DNA of 64,000 nucleotides, taken from positions 1,060,708 to 1,124,707 of the forward strand of contig RHPI01002368.1 of the NCBI GenBank assembly GCA_009103225.1, written 5' to 3'. The notes under the pieces were generated by a model. The model was not told where the DNA came from. It worked only from the letters and a program-made list of their open reading frames with translations, and made no database searches. The stretch is from Chlorokybus atmophyticus (Eukaryota > Plantae > Mesostigma and Chlorokybus algae). This document shows positions 33,105 through 64,000 of this stretch, one piece after another. Within the stretch, counting starts at the first letter, position 1. Every line of letters starts with the position of its first letter. A program made the position numbers and the translations under genes.

Positions 33105-33126
33105 CGCACAAGTAGCCATAGACTGA

Positions 33127-40918: not shown

Positions 40919-41471
40919 ATACCTCTGCGTTTCAGCGTCTTGTGCTCTCTGTATCGAACATGACTGAGGAGGAGCAGCTGGACCGCTACACGCGCGGGTT
41001 GAAGACTCTTTGTCGCAAGGAAGTTGAGCTTCATGACGCCAAGACTCTCGCGGAGGCCATTCGCATTGCTGAGCGCACGGACGTGTTGTACTTCAAGGGG
41101 GCTGCCAAAAACACTAATCGTGGACATTACAATCACTTCCGTGGAGGTTCGTATCGCTCATACGCATCTGTTGGGGCTGGTTTGGGAGCTGCAGCAGCTC
41201 AGGGGGCTGGCTTGGGGCCAACTCCAATGGAATTGGGTGCGCTCCACGTTGCTATGAAGGCCCCAAAGGGTCGGGAGGCTGCCAAGGCTGTTCGGAAGTG
41301 CTGGGAGTGCTCTTCTGCTGATCACGCGCGCTCCAACTGCCCTATCTATAAGGCAAAGTCTGCTGCACATGCCCGCAACGCTCGCAGCGGTGGACGCGTG
41401 AACATGGTGGAGGAGGAGATGTTGCAGCCGGGAAACGGCTCACCTCAGTAGCTGGAGAGGCTCCTGCTGAG

Positions 41472-44400
41472 GTGGTGATGCAGCCTCACTATGATGTTGA
41501 ATGTCCAGCGGCTGGCGTGGAAGCGTTGTTGACGGTTGGCGGCATGTGCGCAACGGCAACGCAAAGCGGTATGGTTCGAGTGCCCGACAAGGCGAGGCAG
41601 CTGTTGGGAGTCATGGCTCTGATCCGTGAGGGCAATGGGCCATGGATGGAGTGCAAGATGCTGGTGGATTGCGGCGCGAACAGCAATTTCATGAGTCGTG
41701 AGGTTGCGCGTCGGCACAAGTGGTTGTCATGGGCAAATGCCGGCTCGGTGGCTCTAGCGGACGGCTATGCGCCAGCAGGAGGAGCTTCCAAGCAAAGCAA
41801 AGAGCTTGAAATGCACGTGGGGATGATGAAGGATCGCCTACGGTTTTGCTGCATCGAGCTGAACAACGGCTTTGATGGCATTTTGGGGCTGCCTTGGCTT
41901 TGGTCACATAACCCCGCCATTGATTGGAGGAAGCGGGTGCTCACTACCCCGGAAGCTGGTGGTGAGGTTTTGATGTGCTTCAATGCTTCAATGCAAGGCG
42001 CGTGTGTGGTTCAAGAGCGTGTGAGCTGCGTCGAGGCTGCTAGCAATGTGCTGCATGCGCGTGACGCGCACGACACGACGGCGCGCCAGCAAGCTGCACC
42101 ACAACATGCTTCTAGCTCAAGGGGAGGGGTTCCAGAGCTGGTGTCACAAGTTTCTAAGACCAAGATGGAGCAGATCTGGTCCGGGAACAATGTGAAGGAT
42201 GCATGGCTGTGCATGGTGCGTGAGACACCTCCCAAGTCGGACTTGGAGCTGGTCGGCACTGGTTCGGAGAGTTCGAAGGACCCCGAGGTGCAGAGGTTGC
42301 TTGAAGAGTTCAAAGACGTCATGGTGGATGGGCTACCAGCTGGTCTGCCACCCACGCGAAGTGTTGATCACCGTGTGGAACTGATAGAGGGCGTGCACAA
42401 GCCGCCGTACCGACCAGTGTACAAGTTGTCTCCGGCTGAACTCGAAGAGGCGAGGAGCCAAGTCGAGGACCTTCCACAACGTGGGTACATCAGGCACAGC
42501 AAGTTTCCTTACGGTGCACCTATCCTATTTGTACGTAAGAAGAGCGGAGCCTTGCGCATGTGCATCGACCATCGGCCACTCAACAACATCACCAAGAAGA
42601 ATGTGTTCCCTTTGCCACGCATTGATGAGTTGTTGGAGCAGCTCGAGGGTGCTGAGTTCTTCTCAAGCTTGGACCTAGCCGGTGGCTACCATCAGATCCG
42701 TGTTGCGCTCGAAGACGTTGAGAAGACGGCTTTCAATACTCGCTATGGCCACTATGAGTGGTTGGTGAGGTCTTTTGGTATGACAAATGCTCCGGCAACC
42801 TTTCAAACCTTGATGAATGAGATCTTTGCTGATCTGATTGGCAAGGGCGTGCTAGTGTACCTCGACGACATCCTTGTGTACACAAAGAGCAAGAGAGAGC
42901 ACGTGGCATTGCTACACGAGGTGATGCAGCGTTTACGTACACACAAGTTGTTTGCTCAGCTCAACAAGTGCCGCTTCTTGCTTGAAGAGGTAGAATACCT
43001 TGGCCACATTGTATCCAAGCAAGGAATCAAGGCAGATCCAAGGAAGCTTGCCGCGGTGCGCGATTGGGCTGCCCCGAAGGACATGAAGGGTGTCATGTCG
43101 TTCTTAGGGCTTGCCGGCTACTATCGTAAGTTTGTAAAGGGCTTTTCGCACTTGGCGGCACCATTGACGGCATTGTTGAGGAAGGGGGTGGCTTGGAGCT
43201 GGTCGGAGGCTGCAACAAAGGCATTTTCCGACTTGAAAGAGGCCCTGACATCGGGTCCCGTGCTGCTGCATCCCAACATGCAATTGCCCTTTGTGGTGGC
43301 GTGTGATGCGTCCGACAAGGCTATTGGGGCTGTTTTGCAGCAGGATCACGGTAACGGCTTGCAACCGGTGGCCTATTTCAGCAAGAAGATGAGCGGGGCT
43401 GAGCTCAACTACCCCGTTCATAAGAAGGAATTGCTGGCGCAGGTGCTAGCGCTACGGCAATGGCGTTGTTTCCTTGAAGGCAAGCGGTTCACACTTGAGA
43501 CGGACCACTCGCCATTAAGGTACCTTCAAACGCAGCCTCACCTCTCACGGCGGCAAGCTCGTTGGCTCGAGTTCTTCCAACTCTTCGACTTTGAAGTGAA
43601 GTACAAGCCGGGCTCTTCAAATAAGGTTGCGGACGCATTAAGCCGTCAACTCAACGCGCTTGAAACGGTGGTGCAAGTGCAGCCCAAGTGGCTTGACCAG
43701 ATCCGTGCCTTATTGCATGAGGACGCGGTGGGGGAGAAGACCATTGAGGCGTTGGAGAATGGGACTGAACATAGCGGCCTTTGGGCATTGAAGGACGGGC
43801 TGCTATGGCATGGCGATCGCATGTATATACCCAACATTGCGCACATGCGCGTGGCATTGATGAAGGAAGCGCATGATGTGCCAATGGCTGGTCATCAAGG
43901 GCTGGAACGGACACTAGCCTTGTTGAAACTGAAATTGTTCTGGTCGGAGATGCATCGTGACGTTAAGGACTATGTGGCATTGTGCGACACTTGTCAAAGG
44001 GTGAAGGCGAGCAATCAACGCGCCAGTGGGCTGCTCCAACCATTGCCGATACCTTTGACGAAGTGGGAGCAAGTTGCTCTCGACTTCATCACGGGGCTGC
44101 CACGGACACGTGAAGGGCATGATGCTATCTTGGTGTTTGTGGACAAGACTAGCAAAATGGTGCGATTGGCGCCATGTACGGAGACTTGCACAGCTCCCGA
44201 GGCTGCCAAGTTGTTCATCAAGCATGTGGTGCGCTCTCATGGCCTTCCAAAAAGCATTATCAGTGATAGAGACCCGCGGTTTACTGGCAACTTTTGGAGA
44301 GCTCTCCACGCAACTCTAGGCACGAGCTTGAAGTTCAGCACCGCGTACCACCCCGAAACGGACGGCCAAACGGAGCGCGCCAACCGCGTCATCAAAGACA

Positions 44401-45110
44401 TGCTACGGTGCTATGTGAACAGCCGCCAAAACAATTGGGGAGACATGCTGGAGCTGATTGAGTTCACTATTAACAACCACAAGAGTGCAAGCACGGGCGT
44501 GACACCTTTCCTTATGAACTATGGGCAACATCCATTGACGCCATTGATGGCGTGGGTGCCTAGCATGCAAAGTTCAGATGTGGAGGCCGTGGACGGCTTT
44601 CTTGAAAGGTGTGCCGACATTACCAAGGCAGCTCGAGAGGCTCTGCTTGTGGCGCAAATCCGGCAAAAGCAATACGCCGATGCGCGTCGCAAGGATGTTG
44701 TGTTCGAGGAGGGTGACCTTGTAATGCTTTCAACCAAGCATGTGCAGCTGGTCACGGGGGTGCGCAAGCTGAGTGAGCGATGGTTTGGGCCCTTTAAAGT
44801 GATCAAGGTCATCTCGAAGGTGGCCTACAAGCTGGAGCTGCCCAATACCATGCATGTGCACCCTGTTTTTCATGTCTCGCTTCTTAAAGGTTATCGAGGG
44901 GAGCCACCAGCTCGTCCGCCTCCAGATGTGGTTCGTGAAGGTGAGGCTGAGTGAGAAGTGGAAGCAATTGTCACGGACAAGCTGATCCGAGGCGTGCGCA
45001 AGTATTTAGTGAAGTGGCGTGGTTATCCAATGCACGAGGCGACATATGAGCCCGAGGAGAGCTTTACCAATGCCAAACAGGTCTTGCAAGACTACAAGGC
45101 CAGAGGAGGC
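41472..45110 (+). CDS. Gypsy pol: protease, RT, RNase H, integrase, chromodomain (one in-frame TGA at 44952 before the chromodomain)
   Basis: LVDCGANSNF, YLDDILVY, CDASDKAIG, AH..H/C..C integrase zinc finger, WFGPFKV, and YLVKWRGYPMHEATYEPEE chromodomain. Confidence 0.96.
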
Positions 45111-45153
45111 AGTCGTCAGCTTCGAGGACGAAGCTCCCCCGGGGGGGAAGGGG

Positions 45154-45926
45154 TGTAACAGCCTGGGGCATTTTTTGTATTTTATTGTACATAAAGTACT
45201 TATTTTGCCTTTTTTGCTGGCTTGATGAGGGCTTTTATGAGCTTTATTAAGCCCATGTGGCGCCTGCCCCTGCTGCCGCGCGCGACTCGCCTGCGACCTG
45301 CTCGACAGCAGCTAATTCGGCGACGTGACCCCCCTGCCACGCGGTTGTGACACAGCCGCTGACTGGACACGCGCTGTGCAGTGCCAGGTGACGCGGACTG
45401 CACAGTCACACAGCCGCCGAAGGCCCAACGCGCGTGGCGGGGAGCTTGCACTTGGACCTGCCTTTAGATTTGGTAGTGAATAATGAAATGCCTGTTAATT
45501 AGGCTATTTCTTCCTAGTGCTTGTATAAATAGAAAAACCCTGTGTAATGCAACCAACTTTGTTTTCTGCTCTCTGCTGTGAGTATGCTGGTGCATGCTTG
45601 ANGGAGTGAATAATGAAATGCCTGTTAATTAGGCTATTTCTTCCTAAGTGCTTGTATAAATAAAAAAACCCTGTGTAATGCAACCAACTTTGTTTTCTGC
45701 TCTCTGCTGTGAGTATGCTGGTGCATGCTTGAGGGAGTTGTGGTCCAAGGCACACTGCTGCGTTCTTGCTTGGCGTGAGAAGTAGTAGTGTTCGTGTGCG
45801 TGTGCGCGCTCGACGCGTGCGTGCGTGCGCGAGTGAAGGCAAGGTTCCGGTGTGAAGATTGTGCTCAGCTGCACACATGTGTTGTATGACTTGTGTGCTG
45901 TGTATGTGAGCACGAGCATCGTTACA
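45154..45926 (+). repeat. Gypsy 3' LTR, lengthened by a ~130-bp duplication at the n (45602)
   Basis: Matches the 5' LTR; the segment around the N is repeated, which is typical of a contig overlap. Confidence 0.92.
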
Positions 45927-46411
45927 AGCTACCTCCTTCGAAGCCACTAGTGGTGCTGCATCAGCAGCAACAGCCACACCGGCTACGACGTCGACTCCGT
46001 CAATGTCAATAGCAACTATTTTAGTTGCACCAGGAGTTGGTACGTCAGTGGGCACCACGACGCCAACATCATTGAGCACAATGGCGACAGCCACTGCTGC
46101 CACCGACTCTGCAGCAGTTGATTGCACCGGTCTCACTCCAGCTGCAGGAGCACCTGCATCAGCGAGTGTTGAGACCACTCTCACGCCACTACCCGGCACT
46201 ATCGTAACCACTGCCAGTGCCATCGTCGAGTCCGCTGCTACTGCAGCGACGCGCGCAGCTACGTTGCCCGCCCTCGACGCCACTCAGGCTGTCTCGCGAG
46301 GTCAGCAAGCTGAGCGCGCGTGGGAGACCATCATGCGTGGAGTAGATCCCACTACCATTGCTTTTGGGCGAGGAGGAGAGCGCACCACGCGCGTTGAACG
46401 CAGTGATTGCG
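45927..46411 (+). mobile_element. Continuation of orphan gag-like element copy 2 after the gypsy insertion
   Basis: Matches 5275-5755 up to GATTGCG, then switches to transposase sequence. Confidence 0.88.
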
Positions 46412-47665
46412 CACATACCAGCTGTGATGAAGTTGAAAGCAGAGAAGATCCCAATCGCAAGAAAAAAAAAGCCAAGAAGTATGGCGTCAACGGGCTGTCG
46501 CCTTTGTGGAGGCATTGGCGGATGTACAAGTTTGACCTATGCCAGGACATGGTCTTTGATACCATGCACACGCTAGCCAAAGGACTCGCCAAGAGCTTGA
46601 CAGCCGGCACTCTGATGGATGGTGGCGACGAGCAGGTCAGCAAGGTTGAGATTGACAGTCGCCTAACTGTGATGAGAAATGCACGGCCCAGGGAGTTCAG
46701 GCATGGTAACCGCTGGCCACATGGCCTCAGCAGTCGCCTTGGATGGTGGAAGGTGCAGGAGCACCAGCTCTTTGTGCAGTTTGCTGTGCCTTATGTTTTT
46801 CACAAGCTGCTAAGCGAAGAAAGGAGAGACCTCGTCATGTGCCTCCACATGATAATTCGCTTGTTCCTTGACATCTCGCGCCGCTTGGGTTGGGTTTCCA
46901 GCCGTCTGAAGCTCGCTGATGCATTGCTCAGGTACTAGAAGGTGAACAGTGAGATCTGCTTAAGCACTAACAAGAAGATTCTGGAGCACATTGCGGGAAC
47001 TTGCCACCTGCTTAACAACATCCGTCGACATGGTCACCATGATGTGTTCGGGTGCTACGCCTTTGAGCGCTCTGTGAAGTTGTATGTTAACACCCCATCC
47101 ATCAGTAAAGACTACGAGATCAGCTTCATGAAGCGATCTGTCAGGAGATGGTTTGTGCGACTCTTTGGCGTCATGCGTAATGATCAAAGGTCTGGCCTGC
47201 TGCTCCACCACAGAGTCGTCAATGCACTATCTGCAATTAGTAAAACAGAATTTAACGGGTTCACCTGGTATGAGGTGGCTACAATCAGACACGCAAAGGA
47301 GATATGGGCTTTTGTGGAAGCATATCCCACCTTGGCACACTCTCAGCACATCAAAGAGAAAGGCATATTGATTGGACGAGGCAGCATTCAGTACGTAGGG
47401 AACGACGCCTTGTTCGGACGCATCTGCACACAAGAGAACATTGCCATCCACACCAAGTCGCGGCGGACAGTGCATGACTACAAAGCCTACATGAGGGACG
47501 GTCTGGTATACAGGTACGTGCTGGCATTGACATCCGTAAAGATGTCCACTTTATGCTGTCCACTACACAGTCTCGACTGTCCATATCGCATTGACAGTCA
47601 CACCGACTATCTATGTTGGCATTGACAGTCGCAGACTGTCAACGACTGTCACAGCAACCACTGTT

Positions 47666-47669
<4 letters not shown>

Positions 47670-47724
<55 letters not shown>

Positions 47725-47748
47725 NACACGCACACACACACACACACA
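47670..47748. repeat. (TC)n then (CA)n microsatellites around an N, in a transposase intron
   Basis: Direct read; n at 47725. Confidence 0.95.
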
Positions 47749-48137
47749 TGTGCACTCTCACACAGGCGCGACTGCAAGGATGCTGTGATGCTTGATGGAA
47801 GCAGGCCTGCCATTGTCAGCAAAATCTTCATGTTCTTCCACACAGAGTGCAATGTGTACATTGCCGTCCACACGTACAACCTGCGAAAAGATGCTGCTGG
47901 CAATCAATATATGGACGCGGACTCTGGTGCACTGCATGTGCGCACGTTGGAGGAACCCTACAATCTTGTTCGAGGGCAGCAGCTGCTGCGCAAAGTGTGG
48001 ATGCTGACGGAGAGACCAAGGCTGCACCCCTACATGCTGGCTTACGACATCAACAACCCAGAGCTGCGATTGCTAGCAGCTGATATACCTCTCCCCGTAT
48101 GGCCTAAAGCCGGGGATGTGCTGCTTGTAAGACATTA

Positions 48138-48692
48138 TGTAATGCCGGTTAATGTGGAATAGGCTAAGAAGGGCTTATGAAGCATTGATAAGGAATACAC
48201 AACCTCTCATGGCGGCGACTTTTGCTACCATGGCTTAGTCGGCTAAGCCCCGCGTTACATTGGTAATCGGAGCTCTAAAGGTCGCGGGATCAAATCCCAC
48301 CGGGCGCAAGATGCGCGCGAGTGGGTAGATTTTCGGCGACCGTCGGAAACGATCCAAGGCAGTTAGTGTGACTGGTTAACAATAAGCTGTGAGGTGAAGC
48401 TGACTGAGTCGGCGCGCAGGGTCGCTCCTGCGCGCGGCAACGTGGCAAGTCGCCGCGGAAAACTACGCGGCATGACCGGTAATGGCTAGTCATGACCGGA
48501 CGCGCGCAAGTCCTGCCGGTCATGAAGGGCCAAGATGTGCAGGTAAAATCGCGGTTAAAGCCGGGTTGAATGTAATGCCGGTTAATGTGGAATAGGCTAA
48601 GAAGGGCTTATGAAGCATTGATAAGCAATACACAACCTCTCATGGCAGCGACTTTTGCTACCATGGCTTAATCGGCTAAGCCCCGCGTTACA
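48138..48692 (+). mobile_element. TRIM (miniature LTR element), 555 bp, 122-bp LTRs, TSD CATTA/CATGA
   Basis: LTRs 48138-48259 and 48571-48692 (TGTAA...TTACA). PBS TGGTAATCGGAGC. Non-coding 311-bp interior. Removal restores the transposase reading VRH-EDEKK. Confidence 0.93.
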
Positions 48693-49549
48693 CATGAGGA
48701 TGAGAAGAAGTCGGTCTTTGACTTTCGCGTGCCCACTGACCCACCAATACCTGCATCTTATGATCCTCCACCATGGATCGTCGTTGTTCGACAGCCCCAA
48801 GTTGACGATGAAGGCAACATGTTGGTTGTGGACTACCTGAAGCCTGCTCCTAATCCAGCGAGTGCCCGCCAAGGCCTGGCGCGGTGGGTGGTCAATAAAG
48901 ACTGTCGCAACCACAAGGTGTCACCCATTGCGGTCAAGAGGAAGCTGAACTGGCAGCAAGTTGATCAAGGCAGATGGCAAGAGCAGCCAACAACTGAGGT
49001 GGTGCGCATGTTCTATGACAGACATGTACTACAAGGCAGGAGAGCCCGAGGCATGTATGCACAACGATTTTTGGCAACAGTCCATGCGGCTGTCAAGGTG
49101 ACTGTCGTTGCGGCTGTCAATTGTGCTCATGTGTGGTTTCATGTTGTGAGTGGTTGACAGCCCGCAACAAGGCAATACGTGTCACTTACAGTCCATGCGG
49201 CTGTCAATTGTGCTCATGTGCTCATTTGTGCTTGTTGTGAGTGGTGATTACTGAAAGAAGGCATAAAAACACTGATGTTCATTTTAGGCATTAACACGCT
49301 TGTACTATACACAGATTATGTATACCAAGAAGGTTTAGATGTACCCCAGGATCCGCTGGTAGTACAAAAAGGCAATCGTTCTATGTATCTGCCTAGCGCG
49401 GGCTAAGGTATACATGGTGGGTTCAGACCTTACCGACTTGCGCCTTACCGCCTGAAACAAGCCTGGCGGTATCTTGTCAAGGCGTCCATGCCTTCAGGGG
49501 TATGCAGCCACTGCAATGCAGCTTGGAATACGGTAGGGGTTGTCGCCTG

Positions 49550-49671
49550 TGTAATGCCGGTTAATGTGGAATAGGCTAAGAAGGGCTTATGAAGCATTAA
49601 TAAACAATACACAACCTCTCATGGCAGCGACTTTTGCTACCATGGCTTAGTCGGCTAAGCCCCGCGTTACA
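49550..49671 (+). mobile_element. Solo TRIM LTR (122 bp), TSD GCCTG
   Basis: Same sequence as the TRIM LTRs; GCCTG at 49545-49549 and 49672-49676. Confidence 0.94.
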
Positions 49672-50127
49672 GCCTGCAACACGGCCGGCTGCACACGAAG
49701 CGGAGCCATCCGCCTGTCAAGTTGCTCAAGGAAGTCAAGGAATGATGGCATGGTGAGGAACATCGCTTCAGAGATTGAAGTGATGTTGACTTCACTGATG
49801 ACTTGGGCCTCTCGCAGAATGCCAGTGTAGTGTGCATCCGCGTTACGGTGGAAGTTGAGGAATCCAGCCATCGAATTCTCCCAACCCTCAAATCCTCCCT
49901 GTCCACCTGGTCTGTTGCGCTGATGCAAATTCTTTAGGTGGACTAAACGCTGCATCAAGTGGCGTTGCCATCCCGCACCCTGTGTAAACCTGTTGGTCCA
50001 GCCAGCAACTAAGGCGGTCGGACCACCCGCCAGCACGTCGTCACGCCCGTGACTTCGCAAGTTCACAAAGAGATTCGTCACCTCACGCGCCCATTCCCGA
50101 ATGGTGTTGATGAAGTCATGCGCACGG

Positions 50128-53100
50128 TGTTGAGAGTACCTACATACAATCAGCATCGACCCTCCACACAGGAGTAGAAGGTCGTAAGGACGAGCACTAG
50201 GTCCGGACTTAGCAAGATGGCGTCGTCGGACCAGACTCCGGACTCCAGACTAGAGCCTTACTAACTGCTTTGTATCTCCGCGTATACTTACTCATATTAG
50301 GCATGTAAGAGCTTGTTGGAAAGCTCTAGTTGTAAGGAAGACAACGCAGCTAAGAGCGCGTCAAAAGGTTGAGTATAGCTTACGCAGTGCTTGCAAACGT
50401 AGACGTGTGTGTAACTGGCTGGTATAAGAACCAGCGGACAACTTGTAATAGATGAATGTGATGTGACTTGTGTATGATCTGGTGGCGGTAGCTTTGACTC
50501 TGTGTGTCTATGCCTGCCTCAACTACATGTGCATGCTAGTCCTTTAGCAGGTTATGGGCCCACACAATGCTGGAGGAGTGTGAGACTAGCTTGTGTGCAT
50601 GATAGTTCTACACTACGGTAGCTTGTTGGTAGCAGAGCCTTGGGTGTCAACTGCATATGAAGGCAGGCACGACAAAAACGGAGGCGACCTACGACAAGGG
50701 CAGATTGCAAAGTTGGACACTGACAACTACAACACGTGGTGCGTGGAGATGAAGGCTTTGCTTATCCATAAGAAGGTGTGGAAGTATGTTGATCCGAAGG
50801 CACCACCACCAACACCAGGAGCAAACACTGTGTGGTCAGAGCATTCAGCAGAAGCACACTCTTTGCTTGTGTTGAACTGCAAACCGCATCACTTTCCCAT
50901 GCTCACTGCATGTGAAGATGGTAGACAAGCTTGGGAAAAGCTATCGGCCGTTTCAAGAGCCAAGAACAACGCCAGAAAGTTGCAGCTACGCAAGCAACTG
51001 AGCGCACTCAGGAAGGAGGCAGTAGAACCCATCACAAAGTATGTTGCACGCGCGAGAGAGCTGTGGGCGGACCTTATTAACGTCGGCCACGACATGGGGG
51101 AGACGGAGGTTGTGCTGGCTGTTGTTGCAGGGCTACCAGCAGAGTACGAGGTCGTTGCAACACTGCTGGAGACATCGTCATCAGAGCTGACGCTAGATGA
51201 TGTACTACCAAAGCTGCTCACCGTGGAGCAAAGAATGATGAAGAAGGACGAGCAAGCGGATGCCGTGGCCTTCTACACCAACAAGCACGGGAAGAAGAGC
51301 AACCATGAAGAGAAGAACAAGGGCAACAAGCTGGGCAATCCTCGTCACAAAGACCTCACATGCCACTGGTGTGGTTGGAAGGGGCACATTGTTAAGGACT
51401 GTAGGAAGAAACAATAGGGGCAACCTAGAGCACCAGCAACAGCGGCAACGAGCACCAACACAAGGAGAAACATGTCGCCTTCACTGCATCCAGTTCGAGG
51501 GCGGGCATAGCTTTCTGGGTGGTGGACTCTGGCTGCGATCGTCATCTCACACCAAACAAGGAGGTGATGGAGGGCTACAGGAAGCTGACGTCCACAATAA
51601 AGGTGGCGGGCTTCGGTAGCGAAGTACTGGTGGCTGAGGGAGTTGGCAACGTACGACTTCAGTGCAAGGTTGGTAACACACTACGCGAGGTGTTGTTATG
51701 CAACGTCCTGCATGTTCTTAAAGCTATTGCGAGTCTATTCTTTGTGATGGTTGCGGAGCGTCTAGGCGCGGAGATCCTATTTCGGAAGGGTGGCTGCACA
51801 GTCATCCTTGATGGGGTCGTGCACATGGTTGGAATCGCTGATCCGGGAGGGCTCTACCACGTGGAGCAGCACCCTAAGGACATTGACATTCAAGCCATGG
51901 TGGTGAAGGACAAGGAGTTGCCAACATTGTGGCATCGAAGGTTCGGGCATCTCAGCTACGTCAACCTCACTCACCTTGTTGCTGAGAAGATGGTCAAGGG
52001 CATCCATTTTAGCACAGAAGAACTCAAGAATGCATCAGGTGCACTTTGTGAACCATGCCTGGTTGCAAAGCAGCATGCTATGCCATTCCCATCATCCTCT
52101 TCTAGCAGTCAGCATCTATGCGAGCTTGTGCACCTGGATGTCTGTGGCCCTATGCGCGTTGTGGCAAAGGGAGGGGCCAGGTACTTTGCTACATTCCTCG
52201 ACAACTACAGCAAGCTGTCCATCATCTTTCCATTGACGCTCAAGTTAGAAGTTGCTGGAGCTGTGCGCACAGTTGTGGCCTTGTTGAAGACGCAGTCTAG
52301 CAACAAGATGAAAGCAATGAGGAGTGACCGAGGAGGGGAGTACATCAACAAGGAGTTGAACGAGTTCTTCGCCAGCAAGGGCATACGCCACGAAACAACG
52401 GCACCCTACACCCCGCAGCAGAATGGAGCAGCTAAACGCCTCAACAGGACACTCTTGGAGTGTGTTCGAGCCATGCTCAACGACACAAAGATGGAAGACA
52501 GCTTGTGGAAGGAGGCGGTACTTACTGCCAACTACATCCGCAACAGGTCTTCGGTGAGCTCAGAGCAGAAGACTCCGTGGGAGCACTTCTATGGAGCCAC
52601 ACCAGATGTGAGTGGTATGCGTGTGTTTAGATGCACGGCATATGCACTAGTGCCTAAACAGCTCAGGCACAAGCTGGAGCCGGTCAGCAAAAAGGGCATC
52701 TTCATTGGCCATGAACCGGGTTCCAAGGCTTACATGATCTTGCTCGAGGACACTCAGAAGATCATCGTGAGCAGAGAGATGGTTTTCCATAAGGGATTAT
52801 CACAACCAGAAGCAGGCTTCTTTCCGGGAGATGACGATGAAATACAGCCACAGGAGCACCCTAAGATAGTGGAGGCTGAGGGCGAGGCAGTCATCAACAA
52901 CAAGGGTGAGCGAGACTCAATTGTAGCAGGCCAGAAGGGGCCGCACATCTCCGAGATGCGTGCTCCTGCTGCAGGTGCGGCCCCTTCTGGCCTGCAGCAG
53001 GAGCACGCATCTCGGAGATACCCAGTGAGGGAGAGAAAGGCACCCGACTTCTTACACAAGGCACACGTCGCCAGTGTGCACAATGAGGAGCCAAGCACCT

Positions 53101-55092
53101 ACGAGGAGGCATTGTTAGCACCAGATGCGGAGCAATGGCAGCGTGCTATGGACGAGGAGATTGCGTCACTTTATGCCAACAACACTTGGTCACTAGAGCA
53201 GTTACCGCAAGGAGTGAAGACCATTCCAGTGAGGTGGGTCTTCCAGGCGAAGCGTGATGGTCATGGCAACATAGAGCGCTACGAGGCAAGACTGGTGGCA
53301 AAGGGCTCCTTGCAGCAGGAAGGTGTGGACTTCAACGAAGTGTTTGCACCTGCAAGTAAGCATACCACCTTCCGTGCACTGCTAGCTATGGTTGCTGCTG
53401 AAGACCTAGAGCTGCATCACCTGGATGTGAAGACTACCTTCCTCTACGGAGAGCTGGAGGAGGAGATCTTCATCGAGCAACCACCTGGATATGAAGAAGG
53501 GGAGAGAGGCACAGCGTGCAAGCTGATCAAGGCACTGTACGGGCTGCGACAGGCACCGCGTATGTGGCACATCAAGCTCACCAAGGAGCTGGAGGCACTT
53601 GGCTTCACCGCATCCTCTGCAGACCTTGGGCTCTTCATCCATGCAAACAACAAGGTCTGGCTGCTCGTGTATGTTGATGATATCATCATCACCGCCAGGC
53701 AGGTGCACCACCTGCAGGAGACACAACTTGCTCTACAGCAAGCATTCTCAGTCCGTGATCTTGGAGAGGCCAAGTGGTTCCTTGGCATGGTGATTGAGCG
53801 CGATAGGGCTGCTCGCACAATCGGAATCAGTCAAGAGCAGATGGTGAGCAGACTCGTCACCAAGTTCGGGCTCACTGAAGCGAAGACCAAGACCACACCG
53901 TTGGCACTTGGGACTGCCTTCTGATGAAGGCAAAGGATGAGAAGGTACTCGACAAGGCTCAGTATCCATATGGTGAGCTGGTAGGCAGCATGCTCTATCT
54001 GGCAGTGTGCACACGTCCCGATGTTGCACATGATGTGGGAGTACTTGCTCGCTACATGTCTGCACCGAGCATGGAGCACTGAAGAGCAGCAAAGGGAGTA
54101 CTACGCTATGTTGCTGGGAGCGCAACAATTGGCATCAGATTTGGGAGCGGGAGCATTGAGTTGGAGGGCTACTGCGACTCGGACTTTGCTGGTGACCTCA
54201 GCAGCAGGAGGTCCACTACAGGCTACGTCTTCAAGCGGAACGGAGGCGTGGTGAGCTGGAACAGCAGGCTGCAGCCAACAACAGCAGCATCTACATCAGA
54301 GGCTGAGTACATGGCAGCGGCAGCAGCAGTGAAGGAGGCACTATGGCTTCGCAAGCTCATGGCAGACTTGGAGCACCCCATGGCGTGCATCGTCATCAAC
54401 TGTGACAACCAAGGAGCCATCAAGTTGTTCAAGCACCCTATCGCCTCAGCAAGGACGAAGCACATTGATGTCATGCATTACTTTGTGCGTGACAGAGTCA
54501 CAAGGAAGGAAGTGGAGTTCCAGTACTGCAACATCGAGGGCATGCTAGCGAACTTCATGACAAAGCCATTGTCACCGCTCAAGTTCAAGACTTGTTGCGC
54601 AGGACTTGGCATTTGTGTTTAACAATAAAAGCAAGCGTTGGAGGTCAAGCTGCTCACGTGGGAGTGTTGGAAGTCATTCCTACATACGATCAGCATCGAC
54701 CCTCCACACAGGGGTAGATGGTCGTAAGGACGAGCACTAGGTCCGGACTTAGCAAGATGGCGTCGTCGGACCAGACTCCGGAAGCCAGACTGGAGCCTTA
54801 CTAACTGCTTTGTATCTCCGCGTATACTTACTCATATTAGGCGTAAGAGCTTGTTGGAAAGCTCTAGTTGTAAGGAAGACAACGCAGCTAAGAGCGCGTC
54901 AAAAGGCTGAGTATAGCTTACGCAGTGCAAACGTTGCAAACGTAGACGTGTGTGTAACTGGCTGGTATAAGAACCAGCGGACAACTTGTAATAGATGAAT
55001 GTGATGTGACTTGTGTATGATCTGGTGGCGGTAGCTTTGTCTCTGTGTGTCTATGCTTGCCTCAACTACATGTGCATGCTAGTTCTTCAACA
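50128..55092 (+). mobile_element. Complete Ty1/copia element family A, TSD CACGG
   Basis: LTRs 50128-50549 and 54665-55092. CACGG at 50123-50127 and 55093-55097. PBS GGTTATGGGCCC at 50550. Domain order gag-PR-IN-RT-RH. Confidence 0.97.
50678..54622 (+). pseudogene. Copia gag-pol with start codon ATG>ACG, an in-frame stop at 51415 and frameshifts
   Basis: VDSGCDRH, WHRRFGH, VHLDVCGP, RSDRGGEY, LLVYVDDIII, GYCDSDFAGD and KHIDVMHYFVRD motifs. Confidence 0.95.
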
Positions 55093-55393
55093 CACGGTGA
55101 TGTTCAAGCTGCTGCTGTTGCTGCCAAAGCTGGTTCTGCAGCTGCGTTTGTTGCTGTTGCGCTTGCTGAAGCTGTAGCTGCATATCCTGGAGGTGTTCAA
55201 CAAGTTGTTGCGGTGGCTGCGGGAGCTGTTGTAGAGCCTTTGGAATGGTCTACCCCATCCTGGAGGGCTTTCTCCGTCTTCGCTTGATTGGACTCCCTAT
55301 CTGCGCAGTCGTACTGATTCTGCAGGCTGTCCAGTGCCTCTTGTTTAGGCCGCTCATCGAGTGCAGCGTAGAGCTCCACCGATAGCTGTTCTA

Positions 55394-55847
55394 TGTTGAC
55401 ATACACACGTGCAAGTGACACGCCAACAACATAAACACAAGAGCATGACTGCTACTGCCGCCATAGCATCCGCACACATGCTACATCGTGACCTCTTATC
55501 TTCATTGCAACAAGTCTGGGCTTTATACCCCGCCAGTCTCTACACACGTCTACATTGGTAAGCACCGCGTGCGCTATACTCAGCCGATTGCTGTTTTGTA
55601 AGCTACGCTGTCTAGCTTACAACCAGAGCTTTCCAACAAACTAAGCCACGCTTGCTAAGCTTACGTATACACAAAGCTACGCGGTTTCTCCCAACGCTCT
55701 ACTCAGCATCTGGTCCGGAGTCCGTCCTGGCTCGACCATCTTGCTAAGTCCGGAGTCCACGTGCTCAGCCCATACATTGGACTCTCGACTCTTGTGTAGA
55801 GGGCAAGCTGACCGGATACAAGCATCGCCCATGTGATACCTTCAACA
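55394..55847 (-). mobile_element. Solo copia LTR (family D), TSD TTCTA
   Basis: TGTTG...CAACA flanked by TTCTA at 55389-55393 and 55848-55852. Shares the CGGTCAGCTTGCCCT and TATA-hairpin motifs with families A-C. Confidence 0.9.
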
Positions 55848-58800
55848 TTCTAGCCTGTCAACGTTTCTCTGCGCCTCCCCCAACTGTTGCTGCACCTCTC
55901 CCAACTGCTTCTCTGCATTCTCAGCTCACACTCTCACTTTGTTGACAGCCTCAGTGTTGATTTGCGCGTGCCCCAATTGTTGCTCCAGCTCTCGATTGCG
56001 GGCTCGCACCTCTTCCAACTGCTTCTCTGCTCGCTCAGCTCTCTCTGTCAGTGCGTTGACAGTCTCAGTGCTGACAGCCCCAGTAACAGGTCGTGCCGCT
56101 TGCTGCTGCAGCTTGAGTAGCTGTTCCCTTGTACGGTGCAGCTTTTTACCAACATTGGCCGCCGCACTTGAGGTGGACACCAGCTGCTGCACCCGTTCCA
56201 ACAGACTCGCGTTGCGCTGATGGTACTCGTGAAGCACCGCATCGGTGGAGCGCCAACGGTTCTCTGCGTCTGCCGCCATGGTGGTCATCGATGCGTTTGA
56301 TGCTGCAACCTCCTGCTGTGCCTAAAGCAACTGCCGGCGCAGACTGTCAACCTCCTCAGCATTGGATACCGCCGCCAACTCCCTTTGCTGCAGCTCCTCA
56401 GCATAGAATTTTGCTGCCAACTCCCTTTACTGCAGCTGCTGCCGTAGCAGTTTGTCTTCACGGGTGAAGTTGTCAGCCAGCAGCCTACGCTGCCGGTGTG
56501 ACTCCTCCAGATTGTTGAGAGCACGTTCAAATTGCTTCTTGCGCATCTTATCGAAGTTACGCATGGACTCCTGCAAGACCGTGTCACTGATCTGTGCCCG
56601 CTCGTTGGCATCCTGCAGCAGCAAAATGAAAAGTGAGTCCACACACTGGCCAGCAGAGCATTGCCAACGTATACCAAACTCTGTGACAGTCGTCAACGAA
56701 AAACCATTGAGGACTGTCAACAGTTTGTGCCCATGCGAGCGCAAACTGTATGCTGCAAGCCTTGTTGATAGCCCATGTGTGTATAAACTGTACCTTTGCT
56801 GCAGATGCCAGGTTTTGCACGGCTTGCAATGCAGCGTCGAGGTCCGCGGCGTGCACGCTATCGGCTTCTCGCATCTTCACAAGCGCCTCGGGCTCAGCGC
56901 CGGGAGTCAGATCCCGGGCGACATTTTGCAGAAGTAGAGGCGGCCATGTGGCGTACTTGGTGTTGGCGTATTCGCTGGTGGTGTCGGACCTGCGACAACT
57001 TTTCGCAGACATTCTCTGAACGAAGAGCCTGATAGCTGCAAGGTTGATAGCTGCAAGGTTCCGGTAGGGGTGGACTGTTCAGTTGATGGCGTGGTCGATT
57101 GCGCAGTTCCTTTTGTGGCTGCTGGCAGGTCCTGGCGCTGCTTTTTGGACGGTGGTGGAGTAAGAGGAGGGGGACCTTCTATTCTCCTAGTAGGTAGCTT
57201 GGGACTGTCAACACGTGGAGGGTCTGGGGCTTGCGTACTGATGCCAGCTGGCGTACAAGTAACAGGGGGAGGTGCCGGTGGGCCATGGGGATTGTGAGGG
57301 GGAGGGGACGGTGGGCCATGGGGGTTGTAAGTGGGACTGTGAGGGGGACTATTCTCTGGCCTGTCAGACCGCATGGGCCTTAGACCAGTGGTGGGTGGAC
57401 GCATGTTGGCGCGCTCGAGCCAAGTCCACAGGGGATGCGAATCAATCTCTGTATCACTCATGGGGTTCACAGGTTTAGGCCTAGCAGGCATCGCCTGAGC
57501 CGCAGTGGAAGGCTCCGTCATGGCTTCCAATGCACGTGCTGCATCAGCCTCCTTGTGCTGCTCCTTCTTCTCCTCGTGCTCGATCTGCTCGTTGACGATG
57601 ACACGCAGCGCGTCTTGCATCTCCTCGGAGAGGAGCTTCTTCTTGCATTTTTGAAGAATAGCTGTTATCTTCTTCTCCCAATGCTTTTCCCTTTCCTCCT
57701 GCTGCAGTTCAAGCGATACAGCCTGCCGGGTAAGAGCTTTCTCCCTGGCAGCCAGGCCAAGTGTTTGAGCTTGGTGCGCCTCGACAGACTTGGTGTGGAT
57801 GGCGGCCATTTTCTCCTGCAAACAAAGGTAACAAGTTAGGGCTCTGTGTGGAATGTTTGGTGGCCTACATGGCAACGTACCCTAAGCACATTCTCTTGTG
57901 TAATCCGTAGCTCTAGGTCTTTAATGACTTGTTTGAGGTCGTCTACTTGTCTGTTTGCTGCCTCTTTCATTTCATAGGCAGCGTCATACACAGCTTTACA
58001 GAAGTAAACAGATATTTGGCGCTGAACATGAGCTTCAGGGTCTATCTGTTGACAGAGGTGCATACTCTATTGGTTGTTGGCATGCAATCCGCGGTGCAGC
58101 TCACGAACTGCACGGCGATTTGCATGCCAACAACAGACCGTAAAAAGGGACTGTCAATATACATGCCCTGCTCTACAAGAATACATAACTTGCCATTGAT
58201 CTGGTGCGCTTCAGCTTGACAGCACGGGTGAGCAACCGCCTGGAATACGCCCTAGCACTCTCGCCCGGCTCCCTTAGCGCCTTGCTCGTTACTAGCCACA
58301 TAGCGTCCTCCATGGCCAGCCCCCCAGCCATATACGAACTTCTGCGCAACATCTTCCATTCTCCACAGTTGGGTCTGCAACCAAAAAGGCCACTTGATGT
58401 CCTGTGACAGATTGACAGTCTGCATTGACAGTCTGGCATTGACAGCTGCCTAACAAGCAAGCATTCATGCAACAATGCAACCACTTACTTTGTCTGTCTT
58501 CCCATCAGGTGGCCCACGGAAAGGGTCATAGTCTAATAGTAGCTCCTCTCCTGCCTGTATATCCTTGATTGCATACACAGTGACAGCTGGCTTGCCAGCG
58601 TCATCGAAGTCCGGCCAGAGCATGGCGTTGGGCTCACGCTGTTGCCCGTGTACGGAATTGATGTAGGCTGCCACATTGCCAGTGCGGGGGTGGCCATCGA
58701 TAACAACCTGATATTTGTTTTTTTAGGGGGGGCGGGAACAGGTGGACGTGATATTGTCTGTGGTGTTAAAAGCCGGTTGTTAGCTGGCAACTGCGGAAGA

Positions 58801-60024
58801 CATCCGCTGCTCCTGGTATGTGAACCATTTGCCATCGTATGGCATCAGATATTCCTCTGCAAAGTTGCACACAGGTCATCAGTGATAAGCACAGGTGTAT
58901 ACACAAACATGTCGCGTATACACGTGCACGCACCGTTCGCTATGTCCTAGCGGGCAAACAGTCCCAGTCCAACACCAGTAATTGTGGAGTCCTTGATCTC
59001 CCAGTTGTGCAGGTGATACTTGGAACTTCGCTTTGACCGGAATGCTTGTGGATGCTTTCACATCCTTTAAATAATTCAGCCGCCACAGCTGGTGCTTGTC
59101 TCTCGCTCCACGATGGATGAGCTTCAGGTTGGGAATCTCATTGTCAGTCTGTTTAAAGCAGTGGTCAGTTGCAATGCTGTGAGAGCCACACAGATGACAG
59201 TCTTGCTTGACAGTCCTCTAAGCAGGGGGGGGGTGGGGGTATTCACGACATATGCTTACCCTCAAGACGTCGTCCAACAGGTTGGGTGGCTGTGTGGTGC
59301 CCGTGGAACTGTAGCGTTTCACATTGAACCTCTGCATCTCTTGAAGAGCTGCACGGAACTCTTCTTTGGGATCCTCCGCAGGTTCTTTGCCGCGTTGCTG
59401 TGCGGAGGATTTACACAATGATGGACTTGTTGAGACATCTGCAGTCTCCTCCGAGTCTGCCTCCTCGCTTCCTTCCGGCTCCTGTTGCTGTTGCAATTGC
59501 TGCTGCTGCCGCTGCTGCTGCTGCTGCGCCTGCTGCTGCGCTTGCTCCGCTTGCTCCTCTTCCACCTCCAACTGCGTATTGCGAGGTCAAAAGATATACT
59601 GCCTTGACAGCCGTCCCGCTTCGTCTCACAGTTCTTGCGTCTGTAACCTTGGGTAAGTAAGAATGCCGCGATGATTGGTGTACAAATGCATAAACTCACC
59701 ATCCTGGGATGGCCATGACTTTTGCCATTTGTAGTACTTCAGCAACGCGACATGTGGGTGAGGGTGGGCCGGGAATTGATCCTTCTGCAATACGCTGCTG
59801 GTGAGTTTCTCGTGCAATGGGACATGTCACGCAAATGTAAGTTGATAACTAGGCTGATAGAACAAAACAACATCATGCAAGTGACATGCACAGGATCCCA
59901 GCAGCGACTGTCAATGCGATGCGCGATGCGCCATGGCACAGAGCTGACAGCCCATGCATGTCGTAAACAATCTTGATTGTTGAACGTTCTTACCTTGATG
60001 GCTTGCTGGTATTGAAGCCCCATA

Positions 60025-60454
60025 TGTTGAGAGTCATTCCTACATACAATCAGCATCGACCCTTCACACAGGAGTAGAAGGTCGTAAGGACGAGCACTAG
60101 GTCCGGACTTAGCAAGATGGCGTCGTCGGACCAGACTCCGGACTCCAGACTGGAGCCTTACTAACTGCTTTGTATCTCCGCGTATACTTACTCATATTAG
60201 GCGTGTAAGAGCTTGTTGGAAAGCTCTAGTTGTAAGAAAGACAACGCAGCTTAGAGCGTGTTAAAAGGCTGAGTATAGCTTACGCAGTGCAAACGTTGCA
60301 AACGTAGACGTGTGTGTAACTGGCTGGTATAAGAACCAGCGGACAACTTGTAATAGATGAATGTGATGTGACTTGAGTATGCTCTGGTGGCGGTAGCTCT
60401 GTCTCTGTGTGTCTATGCTTGCCTCAGCTACATGTGCATGCTAGTCCTTCAACA
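60025..60454 (+). mobile_element. Solo copia LTR (family A), TSD CCATA
   Basis: Closely matches 50128-50549; CCATA at 60020-60024 and 60455-60459. Confidence 0.95.
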
Positions 60455-60981
60455 CCATAGCCTTGCACACATCCTGGTCCTCCCTACCGCCCCGGTTGTT
60501 GATCATGCGCACGCATCGGCACACCTGCGTGTTGAAGTGCTGTCCGATTTTGGTGGGCTTGATCTCTCCCCCAGTTGGTTGACCCTTGCATCACGGTGAC
60601 CAGCTTGCACATTGCACATGCAGAACGGGCAGCCCCAGATAAACGGCGCCCCTGTGGACGCCCGCCTTCGTTACATGATGTCCAACTGCCTGTCAATCCT
60701 TCTCCTAGCGACTGTCTTGTACAACTCCTCACAGCTCCGCACACCTCTCCTCGCTTCACCCTGCGCCTTAAGCTACACCCACAACCACACCCACAATAAA
60801 AGCAAACTATACCAGCGAGACCATGCAACGGCTATATACGCCGCCAACCTCCCGTCCCATCGATAATGTCCCATCAATGACAGCCGCCAAGTTGGTGAGT
60901 CCCTAGCCCTAACACTGCTAACCCTTGACAGCCGCATTGTAAATTCTACGCAATTTGTTGCTAGCAGTGCGTTTGGCGTCG

Positions 60982-61030
60982 ATTTGATTTGATTCGATTC
61001 GATGATTCGATTCGATTCAATTCGATTCAA
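60982..61030. repeat. (GATTC/GATTT)n pentanucleotide repeat between the divergent cargo genes of CACTA-2
   Basis: GATTTGATTTGATTCGATTCGATGATTCGATTCGATTCAATTCGATTC read directly. Confidence 0.85.
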
Positions 61031-61431
61031 TGAAGACCCCAAGATATAACAAGTGAGTCTAGGGATCGACAGCCGCGTCGCTAGCTTTGTCAGTTCCATT
61101 GATTGTGTCGCACTGCATTTGGCACTGCACAATTGCGGCTTGTGCGGCGGTCTCAATGCTTGTGCGGTTCGTGCGACTGTCCATATGGAATACAGCAGGA
61201 CTTGACAGTCCTAGTGAGTGAGTAGTGAGTTCGCTTGCGAGTTTGCATGCGCCCTGGTTGTGTATTGCTTGAAAGATTGCACTATTCATTTGTGGTTTGC
61301 TGCTTGAGCTGTCAGCGCTTACTTGAAAGGTGTTTGTTTTGCTTTGAAGCTTGCATGCCTTGTTGATTGCGCGCTGAGTCACTGTCTGTGCACTAAGTTC
61401 GCTTGCTTGTTCAGGTTGTTCAGCTGACATT

Positions 61432-63330
61432 ATGGCTACTAGGGAGGGCAGCCAACTGCCTGCTGCAGCTGATTGCTTCAGGGCCACGGGCAACCATTTG
61501 CTGGGCCAGGTGACAGGTCAGCAGTTCTTGATGAAGGAGGAGTACAAGCATATGCGCACAACGCTGATGGTCAACCTGGAGAAGCTGAAGAAGGAGATGT
61601 TAAGCAAGTGGCCACTACCTCAAGGTATGAAGGGCAAGGACTTTAAGATGAATGCCGAGCACCGACCCAGGAGCTCGACGCAATATGCGAGGCGGTATTG
61701 CAGCAGTCACTTCCACTGGTCTTTAACGCAAACCACACGCTCACGTGGACAAAAGGTGAGCTGCTTTGTTGGTGACATCTGCTGTTTAACAGGAACTTTA
61801 ATTTAGTTATGTTGAAGTGAGCTTTCAAGCATGTCGTTCAGCTTTCAGTTCACTCACTGTCTGCTTAGCTGTCTTGCCGTTGACAGTCCTTGCCCTGGTA
61901 TCTGTGTATGTGCTTATTGAATCATTGACCAGTTGCGATATGCTGTCTTTGAGGCCGTCTTCAGCTAGATGCCATCTTCCAACAGCTGAAAATGATGTAT
62001 TGGAGCTGTCTTGCCGTTGACAGTCCTTGCCGTTGGTACTTTGCTGTACTCTTATCTGCTTGTGTTGCAGCACGAACACACAGCACACAAACAAGCATGT
62101 ACTGGTGCTACAGTACTCCGTTGGCGCGAAGCGCGGCAGTGGTACCGGGAACAGCACCCAAAAACACAATGAGGCCAAGAAGCAAAGGCTTGCCAGCGAC
62201 AGGGAAGCTGCACAAGGCAGCCGCGCTGCTCAAGCTGGAGCTGGCTAGGGCATGACATTTTGTTTGGGAGGGACATGAGGGCCAACCAGCAAGTGGTCAT
62301 GCTTGCGCCTTTAACCGCTCTTCCTCTCACAAACGCTCAGTATCGGGCCACTTGGCTGAAGGAGAGGTAAGCGACCATGGTGCTGTCGGTCGACTGTCGG
62401 TCCTGTTGTACTGTTTTGCTGAGCTGCTGCCTCCATGCATACTGGCTCAAACTTGGTGCCTGCTACTCTGAATGCTCCTCTGCGTGTCACGACAGGGGTG
62501 CGGACGGATATGCTGAAGATCAGGTGTTTGACATTTGCAACAACGTAGTAGTTGTTGGCATCGCCACCATTGATCCCGTATGCAAGCAAGACCAACCAAT
62601 GCGCACGTATCTAATCTCTGTTAACCACTGGATGGCAATGAAAAGTGAGGATGGCAACCTTGCCGTTCAACGACCTGTGAAAGAAAGGCATTTTCTCTAT
62701 GGCATGCCGACAAGCAGCTGCCATGGTGGGCATACTCTGGTGGTACATTGCTTGTTGTGGATATGCACATGCTCCTGCTGTGACTGTATGGTGTAGTGCA
62801 TGAGCATTTCTTGTGTTAAACACAACAACATGCAGAGCAGGGAGATGGAGTGGGCCATGATGTTCTTGGCCAGCGGACGCATCTGCCCCTGTGAGGCATG
62901 CGCTAACGATGAGCGCATTGCGGTGCCGGGTTGCATCAAGGACCGGCTGCCAACGCACGCAGCCAGGCACAACACAGACACAGAGGTTAATAAGGGCTGT
63001 TGTTAGGCTGCTGTCACATGATGAACAGTCGCCAATGCAGCCATTGATCACGCCTTGACAGTCGCAAATTGCATTACATGTTGCAGTTCTTGACTGTCAT
63101 CAACGCATTGCAGACTGTCAATGATATTGACAATCGCCAATGGACTGCACTAACCACTATGGGTCCTATGCAGGTTGCTGGGGCGATCTATGACTGTGAA
63201 GATGAAGAAGCCGCCGCCATGGACTTGCAAATTGCAGCGGGGATTGTGTGCAACACCAAGCCCAACGCCCCACCAGAGAGGAGGCAATGGACATGTATGA
63301 GTACTATGTCATGCGCGAGCATGTAGTGTC
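61432..63330 (+). pseudogene. CACTA-2 cargo gene 3, homolog of 37332-39616
   Basis: LPAAADCFRATGNHLLGQVTGQQFL vs VPSASQVFNCGNNGQKTGDRFL; VVMLAPL..LP....RATWL vs VVLWCPL..PLP....RATWL; DQVFDI/IATI/RTY vs DKVFDV/IATI/RTY; EWAMMF..CPCEAC vs EWPLMF..CVCENGEC. The 3' end is uncertain. Confidence 0.72.
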
Positions 63331-64000
63331 ATGTGCATGATGCCCACGGGGCTGGCGACATGGATGGACCTTGGGATTTTGGCTCTCATAGCCATTTTAC
63401 AGGGTTTATGTGTTGGGTTTTCATTGGGAACTCATGTTTGGGTCCTCATGGACGTGAGGGAGGTGTGTTCGAGGCGTATCTACAGTCAGATACGGAGCTG
63501 ACAGCATATTTGGGTCACTATGGTATCTCGCACAGCTGTTTTCGGAGTTGTGACTTTGAGAAGCCGTAACTTACAGTTGGAGTGGCGGTTTGGCCATGGG
63601 TTGGCGTCAAAAGATGCGTCTTGAAGTGTACTTGAAGAGGATGAGCTTGGATAAGCCTTTCCTAACTGTTTACCGTTACTTATCAACGCCACCATGACTG
63701 TTACTATGCTGGTGCAGATTGACAGTTAGGGTAGTTGGAGAGTTGGTTGGGCTTGAGCTCAACGGTGGTATATAAGGCTTTGCTAGCCTGTTTCCTAGTT
63801 TGGGTTGGATGCAAGTTGGCCTACTGGAGTGCAAGCAACACCTTTGAGAAGAGGTTCTTGGCTGAGCGGATGCGTGTGCACGTGCTTGCATGTATGGCGT
63901 GTGTGCACGTGTTCGTTGCTGTGCATGAAGGGGTGTGTGTCACTGTTGCGACTTTGATGCACCGTATGGGCTGCCTTAGCATGTTCTTTGAGTGAGCATG

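Follow-up and report, generated by a model that had tools for sequence, protein, structure and literature searches.

A second locus with a transposase, a SET gene and gene 3

We analysed a stretch of 64,000 nt from the streptophyte alga Chlorokybus atmophyticus (contig RHPI01002368.1, positions 1,060,708 to 1,124,707 of the forward strand; hereafter the window), which holds two related transposon loci. Family 1 is a CACTA element at 27390-40918. Family 2, the subject of this work, occupies window positions 46412-64000 and contains the remnants of a transposase gene, of a SET-domain gene and of a gene for a Cys-cluster protein that we call gene 3. Its coding parts are the following (ORF, open reading frame; E, expect value):

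46447-49157, plus strand: transposase remnant, approximately the C-terminal two thirds (tblastn to family 1, E 1e-36 to 1e-53)
55926-60670, minus strand: remnant of the SET/coiled-coil gene, in tail-to-tail arrangement with the transposase; 3' limit approximate
60670-60596, minus strand: Cys motif of the SET gene, W.CP[YF]C..NV.AGH, upstream of SET (52%, E 4e-7 to family 1)
59148-58972, 58848-58798, 58355-58188 and 58063-57878, minus strand: homologous exons of the SET gene (tblastn to family 1)
58704-58477, minus strand: SET core exon (49%, E 3e-16 to family 1)
58857-58933, minus strand: intron in the SET domain, 77 nt, GT..AG, phase 1, absent from family 1
57875-56907, minus strand: non-conserved Pro-rich/coiled ORF at the end of the SET gene
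61432-63003, plus strand: remnant of gene 3 (Cys-cluster protein), which faces the SET gene head to head
61450-61701, 62494-62703 and 62824-62895, plus strand: blocks of gene 3 homologous to family 1

Six-frame pieces of 46401-64000 were searched against family 1 by tblastn, together with the reverse search, and pairwise BLASTP was used besides. An earlier note on this DNA had claimed that the three genes align with those of family 1 in the same order and orientation, and had proposed pairwise protein alignments as a check. Results clearly bore this out: tblastn in both directions gave E values down to 1e-53, and the protein alignments were significant for the transposase (to 1e-53), the SET core (3e-16) and gene 3 (2e-8). 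Every significant protein match between the families was collinear and on the same strand, over a span of 46447-62895, and the weakest blocks, individually non-significant, were yet collinear with the strong ones. For the transposase, the blocks found by tblastn were:

46447-46896 against family 1 30749-31198: 40%, E 1e-36
46939-47514 against family 1 31241-31825: 40.5%, E 4e-41
47752-48135 against family 1 32178-32561: 39.5%, E 1.5e-28
48708-49109 against family 1 32568-32957: 33%, E 5e-12

In the reverse tblastn search, a single family 1 piece matched 46483-47142 at 44% (E 1e-53). For gene 3, the block at 61450-61701 aligned with E 1e-6 in pairwise BLASTP and the one at 62494-62703 with E 2e-8; the values against family 1 were 2e-8 and 0.003 by tblastn, 1e-6 and 1e-4 by pairwise BLASTP. 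In both families the SET gene lies tail to tail with the transposase and gene 3 head to head with the SET gene, and the homologous span, minus nested insertions, measures ~10.5 kb in family 2 and 8.5 kb in family 1. On the contrary, no match between the two families was found at the DNA level by blastn (E 1e-10, at least 150 nt). The sole trace was a stretch of 52 nt at 71% within the SET core, in line with the little DNA similarity that the note had described.

The SET domain was recognised in both families by the Pfam SET profile (PF00856, cut-off 22.4 bits), with 34.7 bits for the family 2 exon 58468-58722 and 38.1 bits across the entire profile for family 1 34808-35422. The SET motifs quoted by the note are present in both families, with the correction that family 1 has FDGKWY and not YDGKWY. 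The GxG motif is kept in the two families (GAGLGLF and GVGLGLF), as is the Tyr of EELLxxY. When the NHxC motif is aligned to FINHSC of ASH1L, the Asn is kept, the His is changed to Ser and the Cys is absent in both (FLNSS and YINSV). An AlphaFold model of the SET domain, with a mean pLDDT (predicted local distance difference test) of 54, gave a generic SET fold only, to which a subfamily is not assignable, and Foldseek put this low-confidence model among the SET domains of MLL1, ASH1L, SETD8 and NSD1. Excising the intron at 58857-58933 leaves exactly 14 residues between GLGLF and DGKW, matching family 1; the presence of this GT-AG intron in family 2 and not in family 1 fits a long history of a spliced, working SET gene. 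The nearby stretch 58710-58793, with two TAA codons, is ambiguous: it could be a weak intron, or else an exon that has decayed. At the other end of the gene, the C-terminal ORFs of the families did not align with each other in pairwise comparison.

The family 2 transposase pieces had no Pfam match; the portion that would carry the Transposase_21 domain is missing, and in family 1 the region 29569-30324 scored 24 bits against PF02992 (Transposase_21), under the cut-off of 28.6. A word-indexed search with a 311-aa piece of the transposase found no relative, and in the ESM Atlas the features of the remnant resemble tails of the DUF4218/DUF6830 transposase type, which is a lead only. We also considered the transposase tail as a chromatin reader, a candidate that was set aside as its AlphaFold model, from a 3-row alignment, was unusable (pLDDT 36). 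Gene 3 pieces of both families gave no Pfam match and no ESM Atlas relative.

Long divergence under coding constraint

The three genes have diverged to a near-equal extent. Amino-acid identity between the families is 41% for the transposase (589 codons), 39% for SET (261 codons), 50% for the Cys motif (46 codons) and 34% for gene 3 (172 codons). Nucleotide identity at codon positions 1/2/3 is 0.53/0.64/0.40 in the transposase, 0.56/0.60/0.35 in the SET gene and 0.45/0.59/0.43 in gene 3, giving the order 2 > 1 > 3 in all of them, a pattern that is partly built in considering that blocks were picked by protein similarity, which somewhat inflates positions 1 and 2. Moreover, the family 2 transposase still has long open frames, of 311 and 228 codons. 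Because this order of codon identity and these frames are found without similarity at the DNA level, most of the divergence appears to have taken place under protein selection. On the simplest interpretation, the three genes remained functional through most of the period after the split, the death of this copy coming later.

We consider it probable that 46412-64000 is what decay and 5' truncation have left of an element from a second lineage, long diverged, within the SET-carrying CACTA/EnSpm-like group to which family 1 belongs, and that both lineages descend from a three-gene ancestor, all of whose genes were kept under protein selection during the divergence. If family 2 were instead a very old copy of family 1 that diverged by neutral decay after its insertion, a decay reaching zero DNA similarity would have left stops about every 20 codons; yet the frames of 311 and 228 codons survive, with 2-3 disabling changes per gene. 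In addition, third positions are the least conserved and an intact GT-AG intron differs between the families. The age of the copy, which predates a Copia element whose long terminal repeats (LTRs) differ by 4%, speaks for such a decay, which we nevertheless find hardly credible.

The same comparison bears on whether the two CACTA lineages gained the SET gene and gene 3 separately, or swapped them via recombination, so that the cassette would be younger than the transposase split. Accessory cassettes have been reported to move between transposon families of red algae (bioRxiv 10.1101/2025.02.11.637652), and the present comparison has two sequences only. A later transfer predicts cargo genes clearly more alike than the transposases, and the values seen are 41% for the transposase, 39% for SET and 34% for gene 3; this near-equal divergence, from two sequences and no tree, disfavours later capture or exchange of the cargo. 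The two families also agree in gene order and orientation, in both junctions (tail to tail and head to head) and in having the Cys motif at the N terminus. Since order and orientation are the same and the divergence is roughly equal in three genes, a single ancestral cassette is favoured over two captures, and we regard separate gain or exchange as unlikely. The note had taken the retention of the whole cassette as a sign of selection at the element level. Codon positions, open frames and equal divergence uphold this for the ancient cassette, which was kept as coding; it does not extend to the present copy, which is dead and looks neutral (19 replacement to 9 silent differences, see below).

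Truncation, decay and age of the family 2 copy

The left side of family 2 is bordered by retroelements, one of which we call X:

46412-46446, plus strand: left breakpoint of the family 2 remnant, where the X piece 45917-46411 meets the transposase gene midway
4497-5755: first copy of X, a gag-like retroelement piece with CCHC zinc knuckle and YNGNN-type repeats
25411-26140 and 45917-46411: second copy of X, in two parts separated by a Gypsy insertion
26143-45926: Gypsy LTR retrotransposon, LTRs ~99% identical, pol ORF at 41472-44954 (self-comparison of the window)

In a three-way DNA alignment, identity to the first copy of X (5690-5755) ends at 46411 and similarity to family 1 begins from ~46430-46447. 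As X identity stops at 46411, the start at 46412 proposed by the note is a true breakpoint. The second copy of X is joined at 46411 to the family 2 transposase as one unbroken 311-codon frame. A homologue of family 1 27390-30748 (3.3 kb, 5' terminus and N-terminal part of the transposase) was found by tblastn nowhere else in the window, and on this ground we rejected the idea that the missing 5' part lies upstream of Gypsy or of X. The junction with X at 46411 and the lack of this homologue elsewhere in the window together indicate that family 2 is 5'-truncated.

Family 1 offers the complete counterpart. Self-comparison showed that this CACTA element of 13.5 kb is nested within the Gypsy at 26143-45926; its termini read CACAGGG.. 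and ..CCGTGTG, a 3-bp duplication (ATA) lies on each flank, and all three genes are enclosed. Because it sits inside a Gypsy with LTRs ~99% identical, family 1 moved very recently, and so the group was mobile recently. The family 1 transposase has a single in-frame TAG at 31445-31447, where family 2 reads AGG, and this seemingly intact copy may fail to encode the full transposase. The 3' LTR of the same Gypsy holds an internal duplication of ~130 bp.

Within family 2 we found the following lesions and nested insertions:

46936-46938, plus strand: nonsense codon TAG in the transposase frame; family 1 reads TGG (Trp); direct reading
48137-48692, plus strand: insertion resembling a terminal-repeat retrotransposon in miniature (TRIM), which splits a transposase coding block; 123-nt terminal direct repeats, 98% identity; foreign to family 2
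49549-49671, plus strand: solo TRIM terminal repeat, third copy of the repeat, 96% identity; nested, foreign to family 2
50128-55093, plus strand: Copia LTR retrotransposon, inserted between the genes for transposase and SET; target duplication CACGG (5 bp); foreign to family 2
58947-58949, minus strand: nonsense codon TAG in the frame of the SET domain; family 1 reads CAG (Gln)
59010-59050, minus strand: frameshift, frame 0 to 1, between QLW and EIKD..GVGLGLF; approximate, from three-frame reading against family 1
60025-60455, plus strand: solo LTR of Copia within the SET gene, in its 5' portion; target duplication CCATA; 95-96% identical to the Copia LTRs; foreign to family 2

At the site of the TRIM, the family 1 frame is unbroken (32561 to 32568). 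The Copia at 50128-55093 has an LTR pair 95.9% identical and a gag-integrase-reverse transcriptase ORF of 801 aa, and is 94% identical to another Copia at 1-2179. An intron was tried as the cause of the TAG at 58947-58949 and of the SET frameshift, and was rejected on minus-strand reading.

Contigs of two sequencing runs from related organisms (X1 and X2) helped to date these events. Their genomic-type contigs cover 57300-63299 at ~95-97% identity, and since they carry the relic at this identity, the family 2 relic predates the split of these strains or species. In the same contigs, 60019 is joined to 60455 with 5 shared letters, which is an empty site; the solo LTR at 60025-60455 is therefore younger than the split. 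Depth over family 2 was ~11-16, against ~1000 for the Copia LTR in X1/X2, a depth not being a copy number.

Several findings weigh against the reading of family 2 as a lineage of SET-carrying elements under selection, in addition to the partly built-in codon-position pattern. Neither terminal inverted repeats (TIRs), nor a target duplication, nor a second copy of family 2 was found in the window and the protein libraries; within the window, tblastn and blastn both gave no second copy, and exact-product look-ups of two window ORFs gave no match. The 5' end is missing, lost at 46412, and the 3' end is not recognisable in 62900-64000, which was read for an end of the CAC..GTG type and for subterminal GGACCAG repeats as in family 1. 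The label CACTA would thus be given to family 2 only by homology to family 1. Moreover, this copy is dead, with two nonsense codons, one frameshift and three nested insertions. Compared with the related strain, its coding blocks have 19 replacement to 9 silent changes among the 40 of 231 differences that are listed; this ratio is about neutral and, being indicative only, fits no current selection. One listed difference makes a further stop in the copy of the related strain, and among the runs listed for the SET exons none was of RNA. Finally, the Ser that stands for the His of NHxC in both families raises the possibility that the enzyme could be weak or inactive. The His of the NH motif is needed in SUV39H1, and PR/SET proteins without the motif can still be active.

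These boundaries and lesions also inform another explanation, in which family 2 is a host or domesticated cluster of paralogous genes, or else a segmental duplicate, retained for the benefit of the host, of an old element. It would agree with a locus in which a TIR or target duplication is not demonstrable, and with the region being carried by X1/X2 at 95-97% and ordinary depth, as a single, possibly orthologous locus would be. On the contrary, genes kept for the host are not expected with frames broken by stops, a frameshift and a TRIM within a coding block, nor with replacement and silent changes at about the neutral ratio and a further stop in the related copy (both among those listed differences). 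Moreover, the 5' third of the transposase is gone at an abrupt retroelement junction, and family 2 has a family-specific word throughout the element that parallels family 1 (see below). We hold this explanation to be very unlikely.

Two other repeats were observed in the window. A perfect inverted repeat of 830 nt at 18552-20295, with arms 100% complementary and 84 nt apart and an N at 20296, could represent a fold-back element or else an artefact of assembly. A second pair of inverted repeats (2315-2720 and 23170-23613; 450 nt, 85% identity, 20 kb apart) has each arm ~1.8 kb upstream of a copy of X, in opposite orientation.

Family words, mobile relatives and possible function

Both families contain dispersed words of their own, that of family 2 being:

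46652-63121, both strands: 18 copies of the word GACTGTCAA

These are all the matches to GACTGTCAA in the window (18 against 0.73 expected), and none falls in the nested insertions; the copies are scattered, mostly between coding blocks. Family 1 has 10 copies of its own word, CACTGTCCAG, which sits in 57-bp arrays and is found nowhere else in the window. The two words have the hexamer ACTGTC as common core, with densities of 2.75 per kb in family 2, 1.70 per kb in family 1 and 0.44 per kb in the rest of the window, a 4-6-fold enrichment in the two elements. Judged from sequence, the common core suggests a conserved DNA-binding specificity that may have co-diverged with the cassette.

Taken together, family 1 resembles family 2 in its three genes, their order and strands, in the SET motifs VIDGHP..GN[IV]A..NS and EELL..YDPF..PPD and in the ACTGTC-core word; it differs in being complete and young, without the SET-domain intron, with an unrelated C-terminal tail of SET and with its word in arrays of 57 bp.

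What we observed is homology, collinearity, coding constraint and the decay of this copy; any enzymatic activity, DNA binding or effect on silencing in what follows is inferred. The common ancestor would have carried a transposase gene, a SET gene placed tail to tail with it, and the Cys-cluster gene head to head with the SET gene; its SET protein would have had a Cys motif at the N terminus and a tail, coiled or of low complexity, that varies. The transposase would cut and paste the element. Methylation of a lysine, on histones or on some other chromatin protein at the element copies or close to them, is the most likely role of the SET protein, and would tune the silencing of the element itself or its targeting. 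The Cys-rich gene 3 protein or the conserved transposase tail may bind GACTGTCAA in family 2 and CACTGTCCAG in family 1, and so bring SET to the element.

We also built a profile from the SET cores of the two families and searched it against 1.84 billion representatives. Results gave 13 weak hits (best E 9e-6), among which there was no close cellular SET family and no Chlorokybus element. The two best hits, P0001 (contig L002) and P0005 (contig L001), come from giant-virus-like metagenome contigs of the Joint Genome Institute. They share with the element SETs the motifs YDG.W[YF], VIDG.P..YGN[IV]AGYINS, with the same change of His to Ser, and EELL..YDPF; identity is 30-35%, with pairwise E values of 2e-16 and 1e-12, and only 9e-6 library-wide. 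L001 encodes a major capsid protein of nucleocytoplasmic large DNA viruses (NCLDV), Bro-N and T5orf172, and L002 encodes EsV_1_7_cys, DUF5901 and a TnpB/Fanzor-like gene (Cas12f1-like_TNB, 65 bits). The viral contigs differ from the elements in that SET has JmjC, TnpB/Fanzor-like and capsid genes as neighbours and no CACTA transposase; nothing in the rest of L001 and L002 resembles the element. Scans of viral and metagenome contigs with the SET alignment gave four short or partial loci, without transposase context, and a search from P0005 returned only itself and one relative at 79%. A mobile, virus-associated SET clade is thus a lead and no proof of transfer.

On L002:6158-10498 the SET gene is directly downstream of the TnpB/Fanzor-like gene. 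A JmjC-domain gene lies near the His-less SET gene both on L001:2548-5200 and on L002:6158-10498 (32 and 29 bits in Pfam). From their domains, viral SET and JmjC may form a pair of a writer and a putative eraser, itself possibly mobile.

A broader idea, which we regard as rather doubtful, is that a distinct, mobile SET clade with Ser in place of this His passes between algal giant viruses and the CACTA elements of streptophytes, and that in transposons it would serve as an arm of a self-addressed chromatin system, in which an element-encoded DNA binder (gene 3 or the conserved transposase tail) would read the family-specific ACTGTC-core words dispersed in the element's own introns and bring SET to mark the copies of the family.

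Published examples of transposons with a SET cassette exist, some of them in the EnSpm superfamily. The giant Plavaka elements of red algae (florideophytes), which belong to the EnSpm/CACTA superfamily, carry the cassette PAG1-3 (Bostrychia preprint, bioRxiv 10.1101/2025.02.11.637652). PAG2 combines SET with an N6-adenine DNA methylase domain, whereas in PAG3 a ParB-like domain and a 2-oxoglutarate (2OG) oxygenase domain were identified by HHpred; Plavaka repeat arrays were proposed as PAG3 binding sites, and the association was dated to ~781 million years (bioRxiv 10.1101/2025.02.11.637652). By description, Plavaka and the Chlorokybus elements are alike as large members of the EnSpm superfamily with a long-conserved accessory set that includes a SET protein, and differ in that Plavaka has three accessory genes and a red-algal host, the Chlorokybus elements two and a streptophyte one. 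We looked for the PAG2 architecture in the SET-gene pieces of both families and found no N6-adenine methylase (PF01555; Pfam, E up to 0.1). Gene 3 pieces gave no Pfam match to the ParB-like or 2OG-oxygenase domains of PAG3; as these were themselves identified by HHpred, a remote homology may still exist.

SET genes are also carried by HarbingerS and MuDR elements of Phytophthora and by Helitrons (Kojima and Jurka 2014, as cited in PMC12730594 and in bioRxiv 10.1101/2025.02.11.637652), and SET capture by Helitrons is cited in bioRxiv 10.1101/2025.02.11.637652. They have likewise a SET-type lysine methyltransferase as cargo, with other transposase superfamilies and hosts. A working model, and no more than that, is given by the VANC anti-silencing proteins of Arabidopsis VANDAL (MuDR) elements, which are element-encoded and act on the chromatin of their own family via short family-specific motifs (cited in PMC12730594 and bioRxiv 10.1101/2025.02.11.637652); VANC is not a SET protein and causes loss of DNA methylation. 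The Chlorokybus cassette differs from those described in domain content and host lineage.

In conclusion, the family 2 locus is a fossil, whose value lies in the comparison of the families. It extends the DNA transposons that carry chromatin enzymes, such as red-algal Plavaka, oomycete Harbinger/MuDR and Helitrons, to the streptophyte algae, and it provides experimental handles in a SET domain without the canonical His, a conserved Cys-rich partner gene and family words as a possible address. As two far-apart lineages have the same layout of transposase, SET and gene 3, the SET gene does not appear to be a passenger acquired once; it is probably a long-standing, inherited and working part of this green-lineage CACTA group.

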